A stretch of DNA of 64,000 nt from Hyaloraphidium curvatum SAG 235-1 (lineage: Eukaryota; Fungi; Monoblepharomycota), in NCBI GenBank assembly GCA_025558095.1, contig JAIVFI010000003.1:1090632-1154631 (forward strand), in the 5' to 3' direction. The notes under the pieces are model-generated. The model was not told the origin of the DNA. It saw nothing but the letters and a program-made list of their open reading frames with translations, and searched no databases. The position numbers and the translations under genes were made by a program. Shown in pieces: positions 27,048 to 64,000 of the stretch. The number at the start of each line of letters is the position of its first letter. The first letter of the stretch is position 1.

Positions 27048-30000
27048 CTACGCCCCAAGAATCAGCTCCTCATCGACATTCAAACCAAAAGCGACCGGCG
27101 CGGGGGCCGGAGCGTTGACAGCGGCGGCTTCGGTGCACAGCTGAAGCCAGTGTTGGAGTTGGGCCGCGACGCCAAGAGCCCAGGCCACCGCGATCCGTTC
27201 GCGGAAGCGCCGCACAAAACGAGAGTAAAGGCCATCGAGGTCCACGGGCTGCCCATCGCGGCCGACGATCCCGGGATACTGGATGCGCCCCATCTCCGAG
27301 GAGAAGCGCGAGAAAGTGTCAGAGACAGCGCTGTACGAATCAAAAGCAATCACGATCAGAGGGTAGAAGTTGGCGTTGAAGACGAAATGGGAGTAGTCCT
27401 TCCTGGCGGCCTCGACCCGCCGTTCGACTGCGTGGCCCGGGACCGAGAAGACCAGGCCCGTGTGCAAATGGGCCATAGAGGTGAGGGTCTTGATCTCGAG
27501 CAACCACCGTTTCCGGGTTTCGCGGTGCGTGATGAGAACGTCTCCAAGGCGGCCAGCATCCGCAGGCGTGGGCGGGGTGACAGTCTCGTAGCCATGTGCA
27601 AGGAGGTTTGGCGGCATGGGGTGCACGCGGAGGAGCGGGATGGAGCGAAGCGCCGCGCGGATGGCCGCGCAAATGTCGTCGTGACCAGGTCTGAAGAGAT
27701 CCCGGCCATAGCAGCCCGAGAACGCGTGCTCCCCCGTCAGCGACATGGCCGATCGCTTGCATCCCCGCCGGCAGGGCAAGGAAAGACCAGGGTAGTCGGC
27801 CTCGTGCAGGAGCGGGAGGCAAAGCCGGAAGCGTACAAGTAAGCGGAAAAAGTAGTTGCGAATGTGGTTGGCAAGCAGCGCGGGAGAGGCAGTCAGGAAA
27901 GCCGACAGGCCGTCCTGCGCCTGGACGAGCCGCTTGCGGCGCTCCAGACCAGCGGAAGTGTCGGGTTGCAAGGCAATCAGAGCCGCGAGGCGGCGCTGGT
28001 CCTCGAGACGCGTAAGGTCGCTCTGCAGGCCGTGCCAGACCGGCTGAGCGAAGAAACTGGCGTCCGCAGGGAGCGTACGGCGGACGGGCGCGGCGCCCAC
28101 CGGTTGCCCAGCACGCGCAGCCTCGGCGTACGCTGCGGCCGTGTCATCCTCGACACGCTCAAAGGCAGGGCGGAGGGCCTCGATGATGGGAACCAGTTCC
28201 CGCACGTGCTCCACGCCCACACCCCGGGCCGAGGTTCGAAGACCAAGCATGGCGTCCAAGGGGCCCGCCGTGAGGTTGAATGAAGACAGGTAAGCCGCCG
28301 AGGCCACCTTCTCCGATGACAGAAGCCCCATCCCCGAGTAGTGCAGACCCAAGAATACCTGCTCCCGCACAGTCCGACCCTCCACCGACAGCGGATCCAG
28401 ATCCTCGGCCCGATCTCCCAGCAAGCGCAAGAAGGTGGTGAAAAGCGCGTTGTCAAGACGTCGAGCAAAGGGTTGGGTAACCGAGGGGGGGAGAATGCGG
28501 AGCCAAAACGAGAAGAGCTGGGTCACACAGAGACGGAGGAGGGAGTACAGGCCCTGGAGGGAGGGGATGTCGGCCGGCATGGCGTAGCCGAGCGCAGCGC
28601 GCTCGATTTCATCGAGAAGAGCGGCAATGGAGTCGATCTTGGCCGCGAGGAACGACTCCACATAGGCAGGGGTGCCGACCGGGGCACCGACCACCTTGAG
28701 GCCGCACGAGCGAGCGAAGTCAGGCGAGCCCGGGGCCGACGCCGTGGCATGCACCTCGGGGTCGGCCTCGTGAGGCGGGAAGCCAGCGACGCGGATGTTG
28801 TGGGCCGCACCGGCCGCGCGCACCCGCTCCAGCACGGCCGGGTCCGTCGAGAGCGAAAGCAGGTAGCTCTTGTCCGGGCGGTGGGTCATGCCGAGGGAAG
28901 CAAGGCCGTCACGCACCTCTCCCAGGACGGCCATGACCGAGTTGAGCGGCCCGACCACGGTGAGGTCGTCGAGGTACCCAAGGATGAGGCAGTCGGGGTG
29001 CCCAGAGCGGATGGGCCGCAGCATGCGGCTCATGGCGCAGGAGAAGATGGCAGACGACAGCGGGTCGCCCTGGATGTTGCCCTCGTACATGGTGATCCGG
29101 AAAAGGAGCTCCGCCGAGCGCCGGTCGCGGAAGTAGGCGTGGGAAGGGCGCGAGTAAACGAGGTTGTAGTACGGGATAAGCTGAGGCACCTGGCGGACCA
29201 CCTCGCGCGCGAAGAGGCGGCGCAGCGTATTGAAGGCGTTCCTAGAGTCGACCTTCATGACGACGTGGTCGGGGAAGGCCGCCAGCCACGCATTCACCGC
29301 GTGGGCGGTCGCCTCCGCGCCCCCGTCCACCCCGTGACCCAGGTCCTCCTGCTGTTGGAGCTTCCTCAGAAGAGCCTTGTGCCGCACGGCCAGGTACGAG
29401 CCCGCGAGCCGCGTGATGCCCTCCATAATGCCAATCGGCCGGAGCCCCCCCTCCGGCTTGAGCAGAGGGACGAGGATTTGATCCGTGAGGAGCGGCCGGA
29501 GCATGGGGGTGTCGAGTCGGCCAGTGCACACGCCGTGCACCATGGCCGCCAGCGGGCGGAGCTTCCGCCGCGTCGCGTCGTTCTCGCAGTTGTGCACGAT
29601 GAAAAGTTTGGCCATGCTGAAACCCGACATGCCGGCCCCCACGCCGTCCTTCTTCCGGCGCAACCTGGCCCAGATGTCCTCCAGGAAAGCCGCGTCCGTG
29701 TAGGCAGGGCAGGGCGCGGGCGCGTTGGGGGGCAGAGACAGCCGACACAGCGGCTCTCCCTCCCGCGGCCCCGGGTACAGCTCCTCCAGTTCCGCCTGCA
29801 GCGTGGGCGTGAAGCCAGCCGGCACGGCCTCCCCCGAGAGGGCCGCGGACGCAGCACCAGGAGCGCCCTTCAAGGCGGCAAGCACGATGGCCTTGAAGAG
29901 CTGGTAGTTGAGCGGCCGCAGCCCGTCCCGCCGCGCGCCCCGGTTGACCTGACGGGCGGCGAAGTAGTTCTGCTCGTACATGTAGTCCCCCGACATGACG

Positions 30001-30959
30001 TAGCCGCCAAAAGCAAGGTAGGCGGTGAGAGTGCGGTGCAGGTCAGTTTCCGGTGCCGCCGGGTCCTCGTAGGCCCGTTGGAAAGACTCGCTGGCCCGGA
30101 AGGCGAGCGTGCTCCAGGTGGTGGTCCGGTAGCGGTGCTTCAGCGGCTCCGGCGGCGGCGCCCCCGCGCCCCCGCCCGGCGGCGGATCAGGCCCGGGACC
30201 CCCGGGTGGACCACCGTCGCCCGGGTCGCCCGGATCACCGCCGTTGCCGTGCCCGCCAGCCGCGGCGTTGCCGCCCGGCGCGCCGTCGCCGCCTGGGGGA
30301 TCACCGCCGTCCGGGGCGGCACGCGCCGCCGCCGCCGCCGCCGCCAGCGCCGCCCGTTGCGCCTGGCCGTCCTGCGGGGCGTCGGCCGCAACCCGGGCGG
30401 CCGCAAGGGCCGCCAGCAGCGCGGGCGCGGGTGGCGAAGCACGGGGAGATGCCGACGATGCCGCCGGTGACGCCGGTCCCTCCGCGCGTCCCGTAGCAGC
30501 CGCCCGCGCGGCACGCACGCGGTCGAGGAACTCGACGAGATCGGGTGGAAGCGAAGCTAAAGAGACGCCGAGTGGCGGGTTAGCTGCGTCCGGGTTGCAC
30601 GAGGTGTGCTGTCCAGAAACACCGGCACCAGAGGCGTTTGCGGCGTAGGGACGCCGGCAACCCCCGCACCGCGCTAGCCCCATGGCGCGCAACGCATCGG
30701 CAGACAGGCGCTGCATCGCCAACCAGTGCTCCGGGCTCCGTGTGACCCGAAGATGACCGTCCCGTTTGTTTTTGTTTGGAGTTGGCTGGAAGCGGCAACC
30801 ATCAACCGGGCACGCATGGAGGCCGGGTTCAGCAGGCGCCTCCGCCATCGGCACATCGCCGTCGATGCAAGATTGGTGATGATGAGATAGAGCTCCGATG
30901 TTGGCGAAAGCTGCCGCGCAGCCGTGGCAGCTGTAAGGCAGGAGCGGCGTGCGGCTCAT
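27048..30959 (-). mobile_element. Non-LTR retrotransposon ORF (zinc fingers, RT, CCHC, restriction-like endonuclease), CRE/Cnl1/MoTeR-like
   Basis: Intronless 1303-aa ORF. N-terminal C2H2-like fingers; RT motifs LLKPEGGLRPIGI, KVDSRNAFN, QGDPLS, YLDD and GLKVVGAPVG; CRRGC..HAFSGC knuckle; RPGHD, RLGDVLI and LEIKT (PD-D/ExK type). Confidence 0.92.
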
Positions 30960-31405
30960 GGCGAATACGGTGGCGGCGGCGATGCCGGTGTCCCGCCGCC
31001 AGGATCAGCTACCGCGGACGGTGCCTTGTCCGACGAGATCTCCCAATCGTCGAGCGCATGTGTCCGCATCCAAACCTCCTGTGACTCGGTCAGGTCGCCC
31101 CCCGCCCTGTGCCAGGCCGCAAGCGCCGACCACGCGTCACCGATAGCGTCACGGCCGCCGTCATCGAGGAGCTCGGAACCTGGCCATTCGAGGTGCGCCG
31201 GCGAACCGGGCTCCGTGTGAGCATACCAAGGAGGCAAGGTGCGCGTCGGAGTGGATACTTCCGAGGAGCTCTGCCCCCCCCCGGCCGTTGGTGCCGGCGG
31301 CGTGCCGGGGGTTGTGCGGGGCGGCGCAGGCGGCAGCTGCAAGCTCGGCACGGCGGTTGCAGCTGGGATTTCCCACGGAGGATGGCCTGGGTGCGCCGAG
31401 AGCAT
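30956..31405 (-). CDS. Possible small ORF1 of the non-LTR element
   Basis: Pro/Trp-rich ORF whose TGA (30958-30956) overlaps the RT ORF ATG (30959-30957) as ATGA. Confidence 0.35.
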   Translation of the reverse strand: MLSAHPGHPPWEIPAATAVPSLQLPPAPPRTTPGTPPAPTAGGGQSSSEVSTPTRTLPPWYAHTEPGSPAHLEWPGSELLDDGGRDAIGDAWSALAAWHRAGGDLTESQEVWMRTHALDDWEISSDKAPSAVADPGGGTPASPPPPYSP

Positions 31406-31518
31406 GGAAGCGGCCGAAGCCAGGGCATCAGCGATCAAGATCTGCGATGACGAGGAGGGAGATACGCGCGCCCACTGACACCTCTCAGCAAGGGGGCGTC
31501 ACTCTCAACTTCATCGCG

Positions 31519-32627
31519 ATGCCCTCCGTGGGGCCGTCCGCCGCCGTCCTGGCGGCGCGGCAGCGCGCGGACGCTGCGCGGCGCATGTTGGCCGAGGCGG
31601 AGAAGGAGCTCGCGCGGCTCGACGAGGCGGAGGAGGCCGGAGTGCCCGGGCCGCCGCTGGACCGGGCGACGCTGGAGAGGGCGCTGAGGATGGAGAATGA
31701 TATCAGGATGGGGGAGGAGGGCCAGAGGCGGTTTGCGGAGGCGGAGAGGAGGGAGGACACGGACTGGTGCGTGCACTGCTCGGACTCGACTTGCCCCCCT
31801 TTCTGACTCCCGGTTCCCCTTCGCCTTGCCCCGATTTCCTGCTTGATCTTTGCAATGTTGTTTTATTGGAACTCGCTCGCAATCGCCGCAACCCCATTTT
31901 CCGTCCTTCCAGGATGACGGAGGCCGACCTCATCCAGCGCGAGGTGCTCCGCTCGCTCGGCGTGCGCCCCGCCAACGAGGCCCGCGCCCTCGCCCAGTTC
32001 CGCGCCGCCGTCGCCGGCCCCGACGCCGATCCCGAGCTCGCCAAGATCCCCGTCTACGTGCGCTTCCAACGCGCCCGCCGCGGCACCCTCCACCCCCCGT
32101 GCTCGGCCCCCGACGTCGCCCTGTACACCCTCGAAGGCACCGCCACCACCCTCCTGGCCCAGCAGCGCCCCGGCATCCCCCTCGTCGTCGTCGCCGGCAG
32201 CCACTCCTGACCTCCGTTCCGCGGGCTCGTCCCCGCCCTGCACTCGCTGCGGGACGAGCTCGCGGGAAGGGCAGACCTGCTCGCCGTGTACATCCGCGAG
32301 GCGCACGCGAGCGACGAGTGGCCCATCCGCAGCGCGCGGTTCGCGCGGGACGGGAAGCCCGTCGAGGTGCGAGCGCACGTGAGCTTGAACGACAGGGCGA
32401 GGGCGGCGGCGGGGTTCAGGGACGCGTTCGGGTTCCGCGTGCCGATCCTGCTCGATGGGATGGACGACGCGTTCGACGCCGCCTACGCGCCCTGGCCCAT
32501 CAGGTTCTTCGTGCTGCAGGACGGGCGCGCCGAGTTCGTGTCGGAGCCCGTGGGGGCGGAGATCGACGTGGCCACGCTGGGGTGCTGGCTGCGCGAGAGG
32601 CTCGGGGAGAGCGGACAGGTGGCGTGA
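31519..32627 (+). CDS. Iodothyronine deiodinase-like (DI-like) selenoprotein, about 320 aa, Sec encoded by TGA at 32208-32210
   Basis: Exons 31519-31766 and 31913-32627. Reading through the TGA gives PLVVVAGSHS-U-PPFR...VYIREAHASDEWP...LDGMDDAFDAAYAPWPIRFFV, matching the deiodinase motifs GSxxUPPF, YIxEAHxxDGW and Y.a.P.R. A SECIS lies downstream. Confidence 0.93.
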
Positions 32628-32673
32628 TTTCGAGTGCTGGGTGAGGACTTGACACAAGCCCCGCGGACGACGA

Positions 32674-32747
32674 CGTTCGAGCGCCATGACGGGGCGGCCG
32701 GCAAACCTCATCCGAGGATGGCCGCCCCTGAGGTTTGCGCGCGGACG
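32674..32747 (+). promoter_or_regulatory. Eukaryotic type II SECIS element in the 3' UTR of the DI-like gene
   Basis: ATGAC (32686-32690); helix II GGGGCGGCCG / TGGCCGCCCC; unpaired AAA (32703-32705); mini-helix CCTC/GAGG; 3' TGAG (32729-32732); helix I CGTTCGAGCGC / GCGCGCGGACG. Confidence 0.92.
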
Positions 32748-33012
32748 GATGGTGCCACGGATGCTATCTTTGACAGGGTTGGTGGACGGTGGATTCGAAC
32801 CGTAGCATTCGCATCAGTATCAGTAGATTCTTTAGCAGGCCCTGCGTTGCGCTCAAGGCGTGTCCGATTTTTGAGAAGAGCTGGTGCCGAGGGCGTGCTT
32901 GTTGAAGGAACGACAGAGATGGTACAGCTTGATGTCGTCGGCGGAAGGACGGATAGCCGGAGAGCACACACGGACAGCGACGCCTTATAAACAACCCACG
33001 AACCGTCCGGCG

Positions 33013-35173
33013 ATGCACGTTCGCCGGCGACTATTCTGCCTCTTTCGCGATGCCGCGGTCTTTCCAGGGCAAGTGCCTCGTGCGCCCGGGCCCGGGTCTC
33101 ATTCCTGGTTGCCGTGTGCACGCGCCGCCGGGTCACGGACGGAGGAACGCGCCTGCGGCGGCCGCGTGCCGCCTCTTCCGGGTGTTGCCTCTCTCGTACC
33201 GAAACGGTGCTTTTCTTCCAATATGCCGCATGGGAGCGACCCGAAGGAACGGCTGCTGAACGTCCTCGAGAGCGCATCGAGCGGCCGGATCGCGCCTAGG
33301 CAGGCTGCGGACAGGGTCTGGGAGGCCTATACCGCGCTCGGAACCGCCCGCGGACTCGAGAGCTACCTCGTTGCGGGCGTGGCACATCATTTGGCCGCCC
33401 ATGCGGTCCAGGTGCAGGCCAGCCTCCGCGGGAAGGGCAGGGCCGGAAACCGGGACCACGCCGATGCCTCGCTGGACCAGGCGGCGGAACGGATGGTTCG
33501 GCTTCTCGCGGACGCCACCGAAGCAGGCATTGCCATCTCGTCGTCTGCCGTGACGAGATTCGTCCAGCTTAAGGATCGCCACCTGGGGTAGGTCGCGGAA
33601 GGGCAGGCTACTCTCGGGCTTTCTGAAGATCCTTGTGCCCAGGTCGTACGCGGAGTGCCGGAAGGTCGTCGACTTTCTGCGGTTGAAGTGCCGTGTCACG
33701 CTGAACCATCTCATGTTAAGCGCGTTGCTGCGCAACGTCGCCCACCGCGGCAACTACACCGCGTTCCTCCGGCTCCTGTACGAGGAGCTGACGGCCAGCC
33801 CCGGCATCTCCATCGACGGGTTCATAATCAATCTTTTTCTCAAGGCGGTCGTCGAGGCGTCACCCCTGACGTCGGAGGATTTGGCAGAGTATGCGCGCCG
33901 ACAGACCTGCGTGGCGGACCTCGCAATCCCGCTGTGGGCTCTGACGAAGAACGAGCCCTTCGCTCGGACTAGAAGCCTTGATCCTCGCGATCTGGATGCT
34001 TTGGAGCTGGCTCCAGACCCTGCTTCGGCTCTTCGGGAAGCAATCGTGAGCGGCCCGGCGCCCAGCATCCTCGACCTCTGCCGCCCGACGATACCGGCTG
34101 GATCCACGACACCGGTGCGGAAGATTGTGCAGCTTCTGTCGCTCGCGGCCGCTGGCTTTCGGCAGGGTCGGGAGGACGTGCTGGACGGCCACGTCGTCGT
34201 GGCGGCTGTCGAAGCCTTCTGCGCTTGGAAGCACCCCAGGTGCGCACTGGCCACCTCGGAATTCTTCACAATGGCGCCATTTCCTATTGCGCCCCGTCCC
34301 CAGACGTTCAACATCTTGCTTGCCGATGCCTGCGATCGCCGGGACGCCGTTTCGGGCGACGCGATCCTCGAGCGCATTCGGCAGGTGGGCTTGAAGCCGG
34401 ATCTGGAGTTGTTCAATACCATGATCCTTTTCTACGGGCGCACGGGGAGGCTCAAGCTTGCAAAGGAGACCCTGAAGGAGATGGTCACCGCAGGCTATAA
34501 GCCCAGCCCGCTGACCGGGATGGCGGTGCTGGAGGGCATTCTCGGGCCAAAGGCGACGGTCGAGGACGTGGAGCGCGCAATGGACGCGCTCACATCGGTG
34601 GGTATCGACGTGGATGCGCCCAACTGGAACAAGGCTCTCCGGCACTTCGCGCAGCAGCGGGATCTGCAAGGGCTCATGCGGGTTTACGGGTTGATGACGG
34701 TGCAGCCAAGTCCCGTAACGGTGTCCTTGGTGGCAAAGGCGCTCGCGGATCTTGGGGATACGGGCCAGATGATCGACTTCCTGATCAGCGTTCCACCGCA
34801 TCTGGTCGGAAGATCCGCAACTTGGAGCGCCGCCATAACAGCCTTCGCAAGGCGGTGGACATCTTCCGGGGACTCGATTTGTCGGGACGCTGCCTTTGCT
34901 CTCTCGTGTGCCGCGGTGGACCACACACCACCGAGCAAGGAATCACTGCCGGCATCAGTCCGCGAGCTACCTTTCGTTGGCATGCGCCCGCCCGTCCCAG
35001 AATTCGGCCTCATGCTGGTCATTTTTGAGCTTGCCACGCGGCTTCGTGGGGAGCAGCTGCGAATCATCACAGACAAGGGGAGGGCGTACCTGCAACGGAA
35101 TGGGCATGCGCTGCCGGACGGTGCGGATGCACGGACAATGCTCGCGAGGCTTAGGCGGTCTCTATTGCGCTGA
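33013..35173 (+). CDS. PPR family copy D (intact, about 701 aa, putative mitochondrial PPR protein)
   Basis: Arg-rich N-terminus ending KRCFSS. Intron 33588-33642. Tandem PPR motifs at 34298-34711, e.g. PQTFNILLADACDRRDAVSGDAILERIRQVGLKPD and LELFNTMILFYGRTGRLKLAKETLKEMVTAGYKPS. Confidence 0.88.
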
Positions 35174-63838: not shown

Positions 63839-64000
63839 TTAGGGTTAGGTTAGGTTAGGTTAGGTTAGGTTAGGTTAGGTTAGGTTAGGTTAGGTTAGGT
63901 TAGGTTAGGTTAGGTTAGGTTAGGTTAGGTTAGGTTAGGTTAGGTTAGGTTAGGTTAGGTTAGGTTAGGTTAGGTTAGGTTAGGTAGGTTAGGTTAGGTA
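63839..64000 (+). repeat. Telomere, (TTAGG)n of about 31 units, preceded by one TTAGGG
   Basis: Terminal pentamer array with the G-rich strand running toward the end; one TAGG variant near 63985. Confidence 0.95.

Follow-up and report, generated by a model that had tools for sequence, protein, structure and literature searches.

A probable deiodinase-like selenoprotein gene, with an in-frame UGA codon and a type II selenocysteine insertion sequence, in the fungus Hyaloraphidium curvatum

A stretch of 64,000 nucleotides from Hyaloraphidium curvatum SAG 235-1, which the NCBI taxonomy places in the Monoblepharomycota (GenBank assembly GCA_025558095.1, contig JAIVFI010000003.1, forward-strand positions 1,090,632 to 1,154,631; referred to here, at its full length, as the window) contains a gene whose reading frame is interrupted by a TGA at 32208-32210. 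The question raised by this locus is whether the TGA ends translation or is read as selenocysteine (Sec), and, if it is read, what kind of enzyme is made. The evidence below indicates that the locus is very probably a functional, transcribed eukaryotic selenoprotein gene of the deiodinase family, in which the active-site Sec is encoded by UGA. The coordinates of the features are collected in Table 1.

The TGA is the single internal one in an otherwise continuous frame (...VVVAGSHS-TGA-PPFRGLVPALH...). Past the CAG that closes the intron at 31912, the frame picks up again within a Trp codon split between TG and G, and it runs to a TGA at 32625-32627. The spliced coding sequence of 963 nt has 321 codons, with the internal TGA as codon 182 and the stop as the last, and the product has 320 residues. 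The intronless relative L014 crosses the junction uninterrupted (...DWDW-MSEADLIQ...), in agreement with the intron call. There are two alternatives for the start codon, ATG 31519 and the next in-frame ATG at 31585 (codon 23), and the latter may be the actual start. No membrane segment is found in the protein (the maximum 19-residue hydropathy is 0.98, with X placed at the UGA), and it is therefore taken to be soluble. For these codon counts and hydropathy values, as well as for the folding energies below, the exons were concatenated; for homology and fold searches they were used separately. UGA-182 lies in the last exon, so that a stop at this position would have no exon junction downstream. 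The arrangement differs in the relative L015, where a GTGAGT...CAG intron of about 60 nt (L015:396-460) starts one base past the Sec codon and an exon junction thus lies downstream of the UGA.

The family to which the product belongs may be seen from the part that follows the TGA. These 138 residues match the Pfam family T4_deiodinase (PF00837; curated cut-off 27 bits) with 61.3 bits (E = 1.1e-16), and the match begins at profile position 115, right after the Sec position. When the genome (31.9 Mb in 55 contigs) was searched in six frames through the TGA, the match rose to 77.4 bits over profile positions 74-233 with one TGA inside, and the window gene was the sole T4_deiodinase locus in the whole genome. 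The alignments to mouse Dio2 (9H48; 2.4e-8) and Dio3 (4TR3; 6.1e-7) both begin at the PPF that follows their Sec. The initial annotation had read the interrupted motif as GSHS-U-PPFR, with the TGA at the deiodinase Sec position, and this placement is borne out by the profile and structure alignments as well as by the codon that the relatives described below have at this site.

In the structure alignment, in which Dio3 numbering equals the chain index plus 113, the segments EAHASDEW, AHVSLNDR and PIRFF of the window protein align to Dio3, and the equivalents of Ser167, Thr169 (as Ser), Sec170, Glu200, His202, Trp207, His219 and Arg275 are kept. Cys168 is replaced by His, and the equivalent of Cys239 is absent (Val/Pro at that place). 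In Dio3, Glu200 belongs to an anchor network, His202 and Trp207 form a pocket wall, His219 is both structural and substrate-binding, and Arg275 serves as a carboxylate clamp (PMC7506546).

Since these catalytic and pocket residues of Dio3 are kept, a dehalogenase is favoured: with a confidence that falls barely short of even, the sequence suggests that the enzyme may reductively remove halogen from an aromatic acid or a phenol at the expense of an external thiol. The product would be a soluble protein of approximately 300-320 residues in which a helical domain is followed by a deiodinase-type thioredoxin fold. Its selenolate would attack the halogen on a halogenated phenolic or aromatic acid, and the oxidised selenium would then be regenerated by an external thiol. 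It weighs against this proposal that no non-chordate deiodinase-like (DI-like) protein is shown here to dehalogenate. Thyroid hormones are not known from fungi, which is in keeping with a peroxiredoxin-like enzyme or thiol-disulfide oxidoreductase, the same selenoprotein with a different chemistry only. Such an enzyme would also be in keeping with the deiodinase fold, which is peroxiredoxin-like, the family lying within the thioredoxin-fold redox enzymes (PMC7506546), and with the Pro that replaces the His219 equivalent in most relatives (alignment A1). However, the replacement is confined to the more distant relatives. The window protein and its nearest relatives, and only these, keep the His219 equivalent, and together with those of His202, Trp207 and Arg275 they thereby retain the residues that shape the Dio3 substrate pocket; in addition, there is no nearby resolving cysteine, as a typical peroxiredoxin has. 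An oxidoreductase without dehalogenase activity is regarded as the main alternative, somewhat less probable than the dehalogenase.

Whichever chemistry applies, the reading of codon 182 may be assessed from its conservation. The eight proteins found in a word search are 115-155 residues long, and each begins just past the Sec position. Gene callers therefore cut the family at the UGA, and the window gene has probably been mis-annotated likewise. At the homologous codon, TGA is present in the eukaryote-type loci L014, L015, L020/L021 and L024, and also in L022, which has bacterial neighbours. Among 80 metagenomic loci the active site is readable in 77, and the codon is TGA in 76 of these and TGT in one; such retention shows that the codon is not a chance stop. 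In the tree, the window protein groups with L014 and L015 (62% identity) in a eukaryote-type group marked by xAGSxS-U-PP, and a bacterial group (LVFGSxT-U-PPFRR) is separate from it.

A canonical type II Sec insertion sequence (SECIS) element had been proposed downstream of the gene, and all of its parts are present in the 3' untranslated region (UTR). The Rfam model SECIS_1 is matched over its full length by 32679-32742, with a score of 32.8 bits (E = 1.2e-4). The AUGA core (32686-32689) is followed by a helix II of about 10 bp, an AAA (32703-32705), a CCUC/GAGG mini-helix, which defines type II, and UGAG at 32729-32732. The fold has an energy of -43.3 kcal/mol (z = -3.4), and none of 200 shuffled sequences folds as well. 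The distance from the stop codon is slightly larger than the approximately 46 nt first given: the Rfam match begins 52 nt past the stop, and the AUGA lies 59 nt past the stop and 476 nt past the Sec codon. Similar hairpins (AUGA...A-rich...mini-helix...UGA) are found 40-79 nt past the stops of L014, L015, L020 and L024 by eye and with a simple scanner. The Rfam search gave no SECIS in these relatives, whose hairpins came from the eye, the scanner and alignment folding. In an alignment of the five sequences, 10 of the 14 predicted pairs keep pairing through two-sided changes, and the ATGA and the 3' TGA are fixed. Thus the structure and position of the SECIS are conserved, and its sequence is not. 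SECIS elements were found in five of 16 fungal selenoprotein genes in the first survey (Mariotti et al., bioRxiv 10.1101/314781), and a canonical, co-varying type II element helps to define how fungal SECIS elements look.

Transcript evidence is provided by the public run X1. An 1182-nt contig from this run lies on 31520-31765, skips exactly 146 nt (GT..AG), and continues on 31912-32823 without a mismatch, after which it ends in Illumina adapter. Because of the exact intron skip, X1 is taken to be spliced RNA. The spliced contig retains the TGA and holds the SECIS in its 3' UTR. The codon, for which transcript evidence had been called for, is therefore neither spliced out nor changed to TGC or TGT, and the only splice is the upstream intron.

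The machinery needed for Sec insertion, which the initial annotation supposed to be encoded in this genome, was found in most of its parts. There is a tRNA-Sec, and there are genes for SepSecS, for an SPS2 that itself contains Sec, and for eEFSec (Table 1); the presence of tRNA-Sec and eEFSec had been named as a particular test. PSTK and SBP2 are represented by weak candidates only. For PSTK, these are a KTI12-family locus on contig C22, which may be KTI12 itself, and a weak match to the archaeal PSTK model at C2:720017, in a P-loop protein; for SBP2, one of the L7Ae-domain matches lies in a 437-residue open frame (C10:437052-437579). Elsewhere in the genome, UxxC sites occur in a DsbA-like and an AhpC-like gene, and a C-terminal GGGS-U-GR occurs in a SelK-like gene. 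Sec would be inserted as is standard in eukaryotes, the SECIS enabling an SBP2-type factor and eEFSec to bring Sec-tRNA(Sec) to UGA-182.

Several points weigh against the selenoprotein reading and should be considered together. The Rfam score of the SECIS is about 2 bits below the gathering score of 35, and the profile searches of the genome did not clearly identify PSTK or SBP2. X1 is labelled RNA by guess only, for which the exact GT..AG skip nevertheless argues. The 5' end and the start codon are uncertain, the transcript contig beginning at 31520 and leaving ATG 31519 uncovered. Termination at the TGA would make the locus a pseudogene or limit its product to 181 residues, and it may be said for this possibility that the real stop of the gene is also UGA. 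However, the 138 further open codons carry the best-conserved part of the domain, the TGA is kept in nearly all relatives, the SECIS co-varies, the gene is expressed and Sec machinery is present in the genome, so that a genuine stop is very unlikely. That the TGA is an artefact, whether an assembly error for TGC or TGT, a spliced-out codon or bacterial contamination, is hardly credible, since the independent run X1 gives the same letters with no splice other than the upstream intron, and the gene, which is split by a spliceosomal intron and followed by a eukaryotic SECIS, lies on a contig of 1.15 Mb with telomere repeats at its end.

A further element that may bear on recoding is found directly downstream of the Sec codon. 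Positions 32217-32233 pair with 32251-32267 to form an uninterrupted 17-bp stem, including two G-U pairs, which begins 6 nt past the UGA. An 81-nt segment with this stem folds at -45.4 kcal/mol (z = -3.45). Such stability is reached by 1.4% of 4736 segments of the same length taken from both strands of the 64 kb, and a stem of at least 17 bp by 0.02%; when the codons were resampled synonymously according to local codon usage, 11 of 1000 sequences were as stable (z = -2.65). A comparable hairpin occurs in the SPS2 gene, with a perfect 12-bp stem about 10 nt past its UGA (-49.3 kcal/mol over 81 nt). Such a hairpin is thus found in two of the four selenoprotein genes checked in this genome, those for the AhpC-like and DsbA-like proteins being without one. 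The hairpin of the window gene is a candidate Sec redefinition element (SRE), whose geometry matches and whose conservation is lacking. It counts against the assignment that the hairpin is not in register in the relatives, of which L014, L020 and L024 fold differently, and that the G+C content of the genome is 64-74%. If it is an SRE, it would slow the ribosome and aid the recoding.

The region before the catalytic domain, which had been described as a long N-terminal extension, is indeed present; it is, however, a conserved helical domain and not a loose tail. Residues 35-82, in exon 1, are 48% identical to L014 (E = 5e-11), and the part of exon 2 before the Sec is 63% identical (E = 3e-42). 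The block L..L.RE..LR.S...Q.RF..AE....W..V....Q..VL.E.G...YVR.NRAR.G.L..G..APDV is seen in all 18 aligned eukaryote-type sequences (alignment A3). With this alignment as input, an AlphaFold model was made for the equivalent region of the intronless L014, not for the window protein, and it has a mean predicted local distance difference test (pLDDT) value of 84, with 86-98 over residues 10-100; it consists of five helices, after which the thioredoxin fold sets in with its first strands. No sequence match to this pre-domain was found in Pfam or the PDB, and searches of folds and of a protein atlas gave no convincing relative (Foldseek E > 1; Atlas template modelling score < 0.5). The best fold match, with Z = 5.2, was rejected as meaningless for a helical bundle. 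In a language-model search, the pre-Sec fragment L014:2018-2479 has look-alikes (score 0.95-0.96, in clusters of approximately 150 residues) from Rotifera and Nucleocytoviricota, a hint that the same family, cut at its UGA, also exists in giant viruses and rotifers.

The layout of the relatives upstream of the pre-domain bears on the origin of this extension. In L014 (1094-2902) and L020 (225-1928), the preceding ORF encodes ubiquitin with a terminal LRLRGG, after which come M.H.S.G.., a small domain and a coiled coil; this ORF and the DI-like one share a frame and have one TGA between them. Exactly one linker stop is present in nine loci (L014, L020, L042, L043, L044, L050, L051, L054/L055 and L057). 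The stop is TGA in all nine, in contigs with a G+C content of 36-72%, and the frames always coincide; the Sec codon follows the linker TGA at a distance of 128 to 195 codons, depending on the locus. Five other loci are direct fusions, without a stop from ubiquitin to the Sec codon (L046 at 1000-2542, L048, L052, L059 and L100). By Pfam, ubiquitin is confirmed in L050, L051 and L046, the last of which is open in one frame from the ubiquitin through to Sec. In L014, L044, L050 and L054, there is no ATG from the first TGA to the conserved block, and in L014 the homology to the window protein starts 7 residues past that TGA. The TGA-containing forms occur on at least six deep branches of the tree and are interleaved with the direct fusions. 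A word search with the ubiquitin-to-Sec protein of L046 returned itself and one relative only.

The genome of H. curvatum also contains stand-alone ubiquitin-tail genes (Table 1). Their layout is ubiquitin-LRLRGG-M.H.SSGMRGY-small domain-coiled coil-basic tail, and the tail is without a Pfam family. Their stop codon, which may be TAA, TAG or TGA, follows the corresponding basic tail (...KRARRS-stop).

The simplest reading of these sequences would be that ribosomes go on from the ubiquitin-tail ORF into the DI-like part, in which case the remaining stop would have to be one that a SECIS can recode. A broader proposal may be built on it, which is possible but somewhat more doubtful than not. According to this proposal, the eukaryote-type DI-like protein was ancestrally a ubiquitin polyprotein (ubiquitin-tail-linker-pre-domain-DI-like) in which one SECIS recodes two UGAs. 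Whether a short ubiquitin-tail product or the full enzyme is made would then depend on selenium at the first UGA, which answers to the stop of the stand-alone ubiquitin-tail genes. The window gene would derive from this form by loss of the ubiquitin, for which its hairpin would make up by helping recoding. A ubiquitin-UGA-DI-like layout was not found described in the literature searched. If the proposal is true, this layout would represent a new coupling of protein output to selenium supply and would explain the origin of the N-terminal extension.

For the window gene itself, it is plausible that it is a 5'-shortened descendant of the ubiquitin-fused form from which the ubiquitin has been lost. 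A point against this history is that residues 1-34 resemble the coiled coil of the ubiquitin tail only weakly (7.3 bits; BLASTP E = 0.72). No ubiquitin-tail match was found in a search of the contig that carries the window gene. Conserved synteny with a ubiquitin gene was considered and rejected, none being located beside the window gene. Immediately upstream, on the minus strand, lies a retrotransposon with a 1303-residue ORF containing a reverse-transcriptase domain (RVT_1; 27048-30959). At least 25 genomic copies of the end of this element, 98-99% identical, all stop matching at window position 31465, which is also where the X1 repeat contig departs from the window sequence. This places the end of the element 53 nt upstream of ATG 31519. 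The X1 repeat contig differs from the window at 31368 and 31422 (G in place of A), and it probably represents another copy.

Downstream of the gene, the neighbour at 33635-35173 (plus strand) is an ORF for a PPR-repeat protein (PPR_2, PPR_3). At the end of the window and of contig C3, approximately 31 kb from the gene, 63843-63999 consists of 31.6 tandem copies of GGTTA (= TTAGG), a telomere-like 5-nt unit. In the freshwater metagenome runs X2 and X3, short contigs are 100% identical to 31508-31701 and 32372-32522, and it follows that the organism or a very close strain occurs in fresh water.

Table 1. Positions of the features of the window gene (window coordinates) and of associated loci in the window and in the genome (C, contig).
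Feature	Position	Strand	Description or evidence
Exon 1	31519..31766	+	82 codons and 2 bases of a split Trp codon; start ATG 31519 or in-frame ATG 31585
Spliceosomal intron	31767..31912	+	146 nt, GTGCGT...CAG; transcript skip and intronless relative L014
Exon 2 (last exon)	31913..32627	+	Sec codon inside; stop TGA 32625-32627
Conserved helical pre-domain, intron-interrupted	31621..32090	+	alignment A3 (18 relatives); specific to eukaryote-type DI-like proteins
T4_deiodinase (PF00837) thioredoxin-fold catalytic domain	32091..32591	+	profile and structure alignments
UGA codon 182, very probably read as Sec	32208..32210	+	motif S-H-S-U-P-P-F; frame, homologues, mRNA contig
Candidate SRE hairpin	32217..32267	+	17-bp stem; folding statistics
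Type II SECIS in 3' UTR	32679..32742	+	Rfam, folding, covariation
Young multi-copy retrotransposon	27048-31465	-	highly represented in run X1
Stand-alone ubiquitin-tail genes L120, L121, L123	C26:265999-269886		three in tandem, one degenerate
Stand-alone ubiquitin-tail gene L122	C8:733380-733724		
tRNA-Sec	C14:445030-445115		78.2 bits (cut-off 47); ARAGORN tRNA-SeC, anticodon TCA
SepSecS	C8		three exons; 198.9 + 64 + 27 bits
SelD/SPS2 (L006)	C2:991466-991939	-	169.8 bits combined; own in-frame TGA in KG-U-GCKV
eEFSec domains III and IV	C1:403987-404920		54.5 and 41.2 bits; neither model matches in 14 prokaryote controls

The gene may finally be compared with known systems. Like the vertebrate deiodinases DIO1-3 (PF00837; 4TR3, 9H48), its product has a thioredoxin fold with the S-x-(S/T)-U-P-P-F site and retains counterparts of Glu200, His202, Trp207, His219 and Arg275, and here too a SECIS lies in the 3' UTR. 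Unlike them, the window protein lacks the N-terminal membrane anchor, Cys168 and Cys239, and it has the helical pre-domain; the similarity is low (37 and 33 bits). The missing anchor and cysteines rule out a vertebrate-type DIO, but not a DI-like protein. The bacterial DI-like selenoproteins (L022 and most of L056-L118) have the same domain and Sec position (LVFGSxT-U-PPFRR). Their recoding hairpin lies directly past the UGA, they have no pre-domain or ubiquitin, and they form a separate branch.

The SelenoN/SEPN1 mRNA carries an SRE, a stable stem-loop in the coding sequence 6 nt past the UGA. The hairpin of the window gene starts at the same distance; its register is not shared by relatives. 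Ubiquitin-fusion genes of the UBA52/RPS27A type and selenoprotein mRNAs with multiple UGAs (SelenoP) are also known, and the relatives combine features of both, since ubiquitin ending in LRLRGG is followed by the rest of the protein, and many have two in-frame UGAs with one 3' UTR. Their first UGA is peculiar in that it belongs to a basic, unconserved linker rather than to a redox motif, and the window gene is without both the ubiquitin and this first UGA.

A further comparison is with Gonapodya prolifera, a species of the genus that the initial annotation cited as precedent. A DI-like selenoprotein has indeed been reported from this fungus, together with SPS, AhpC, MsrA and TR (Mariotti et al., bioRxiv 10.1101/314781; Nat Microbiol 2019). 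In Amses et al. (2022), Sec use is mapped to 11 early-diverging fungal genomes. By its published description, the Gonapodya protein has in common with the window gene the deiodinase family, a UGA-encoded Sec and an early-branching fungal host with eukaryotic Sec machinery. Since a related fungus has one, a DI-like selenoprotein is to be expected in this lineage, and the window gene is apparently an expected, hitherto undescribed member of the known DI-like selenoproteins, which adds a well-supported case with transcript evidence to the small fungal set.

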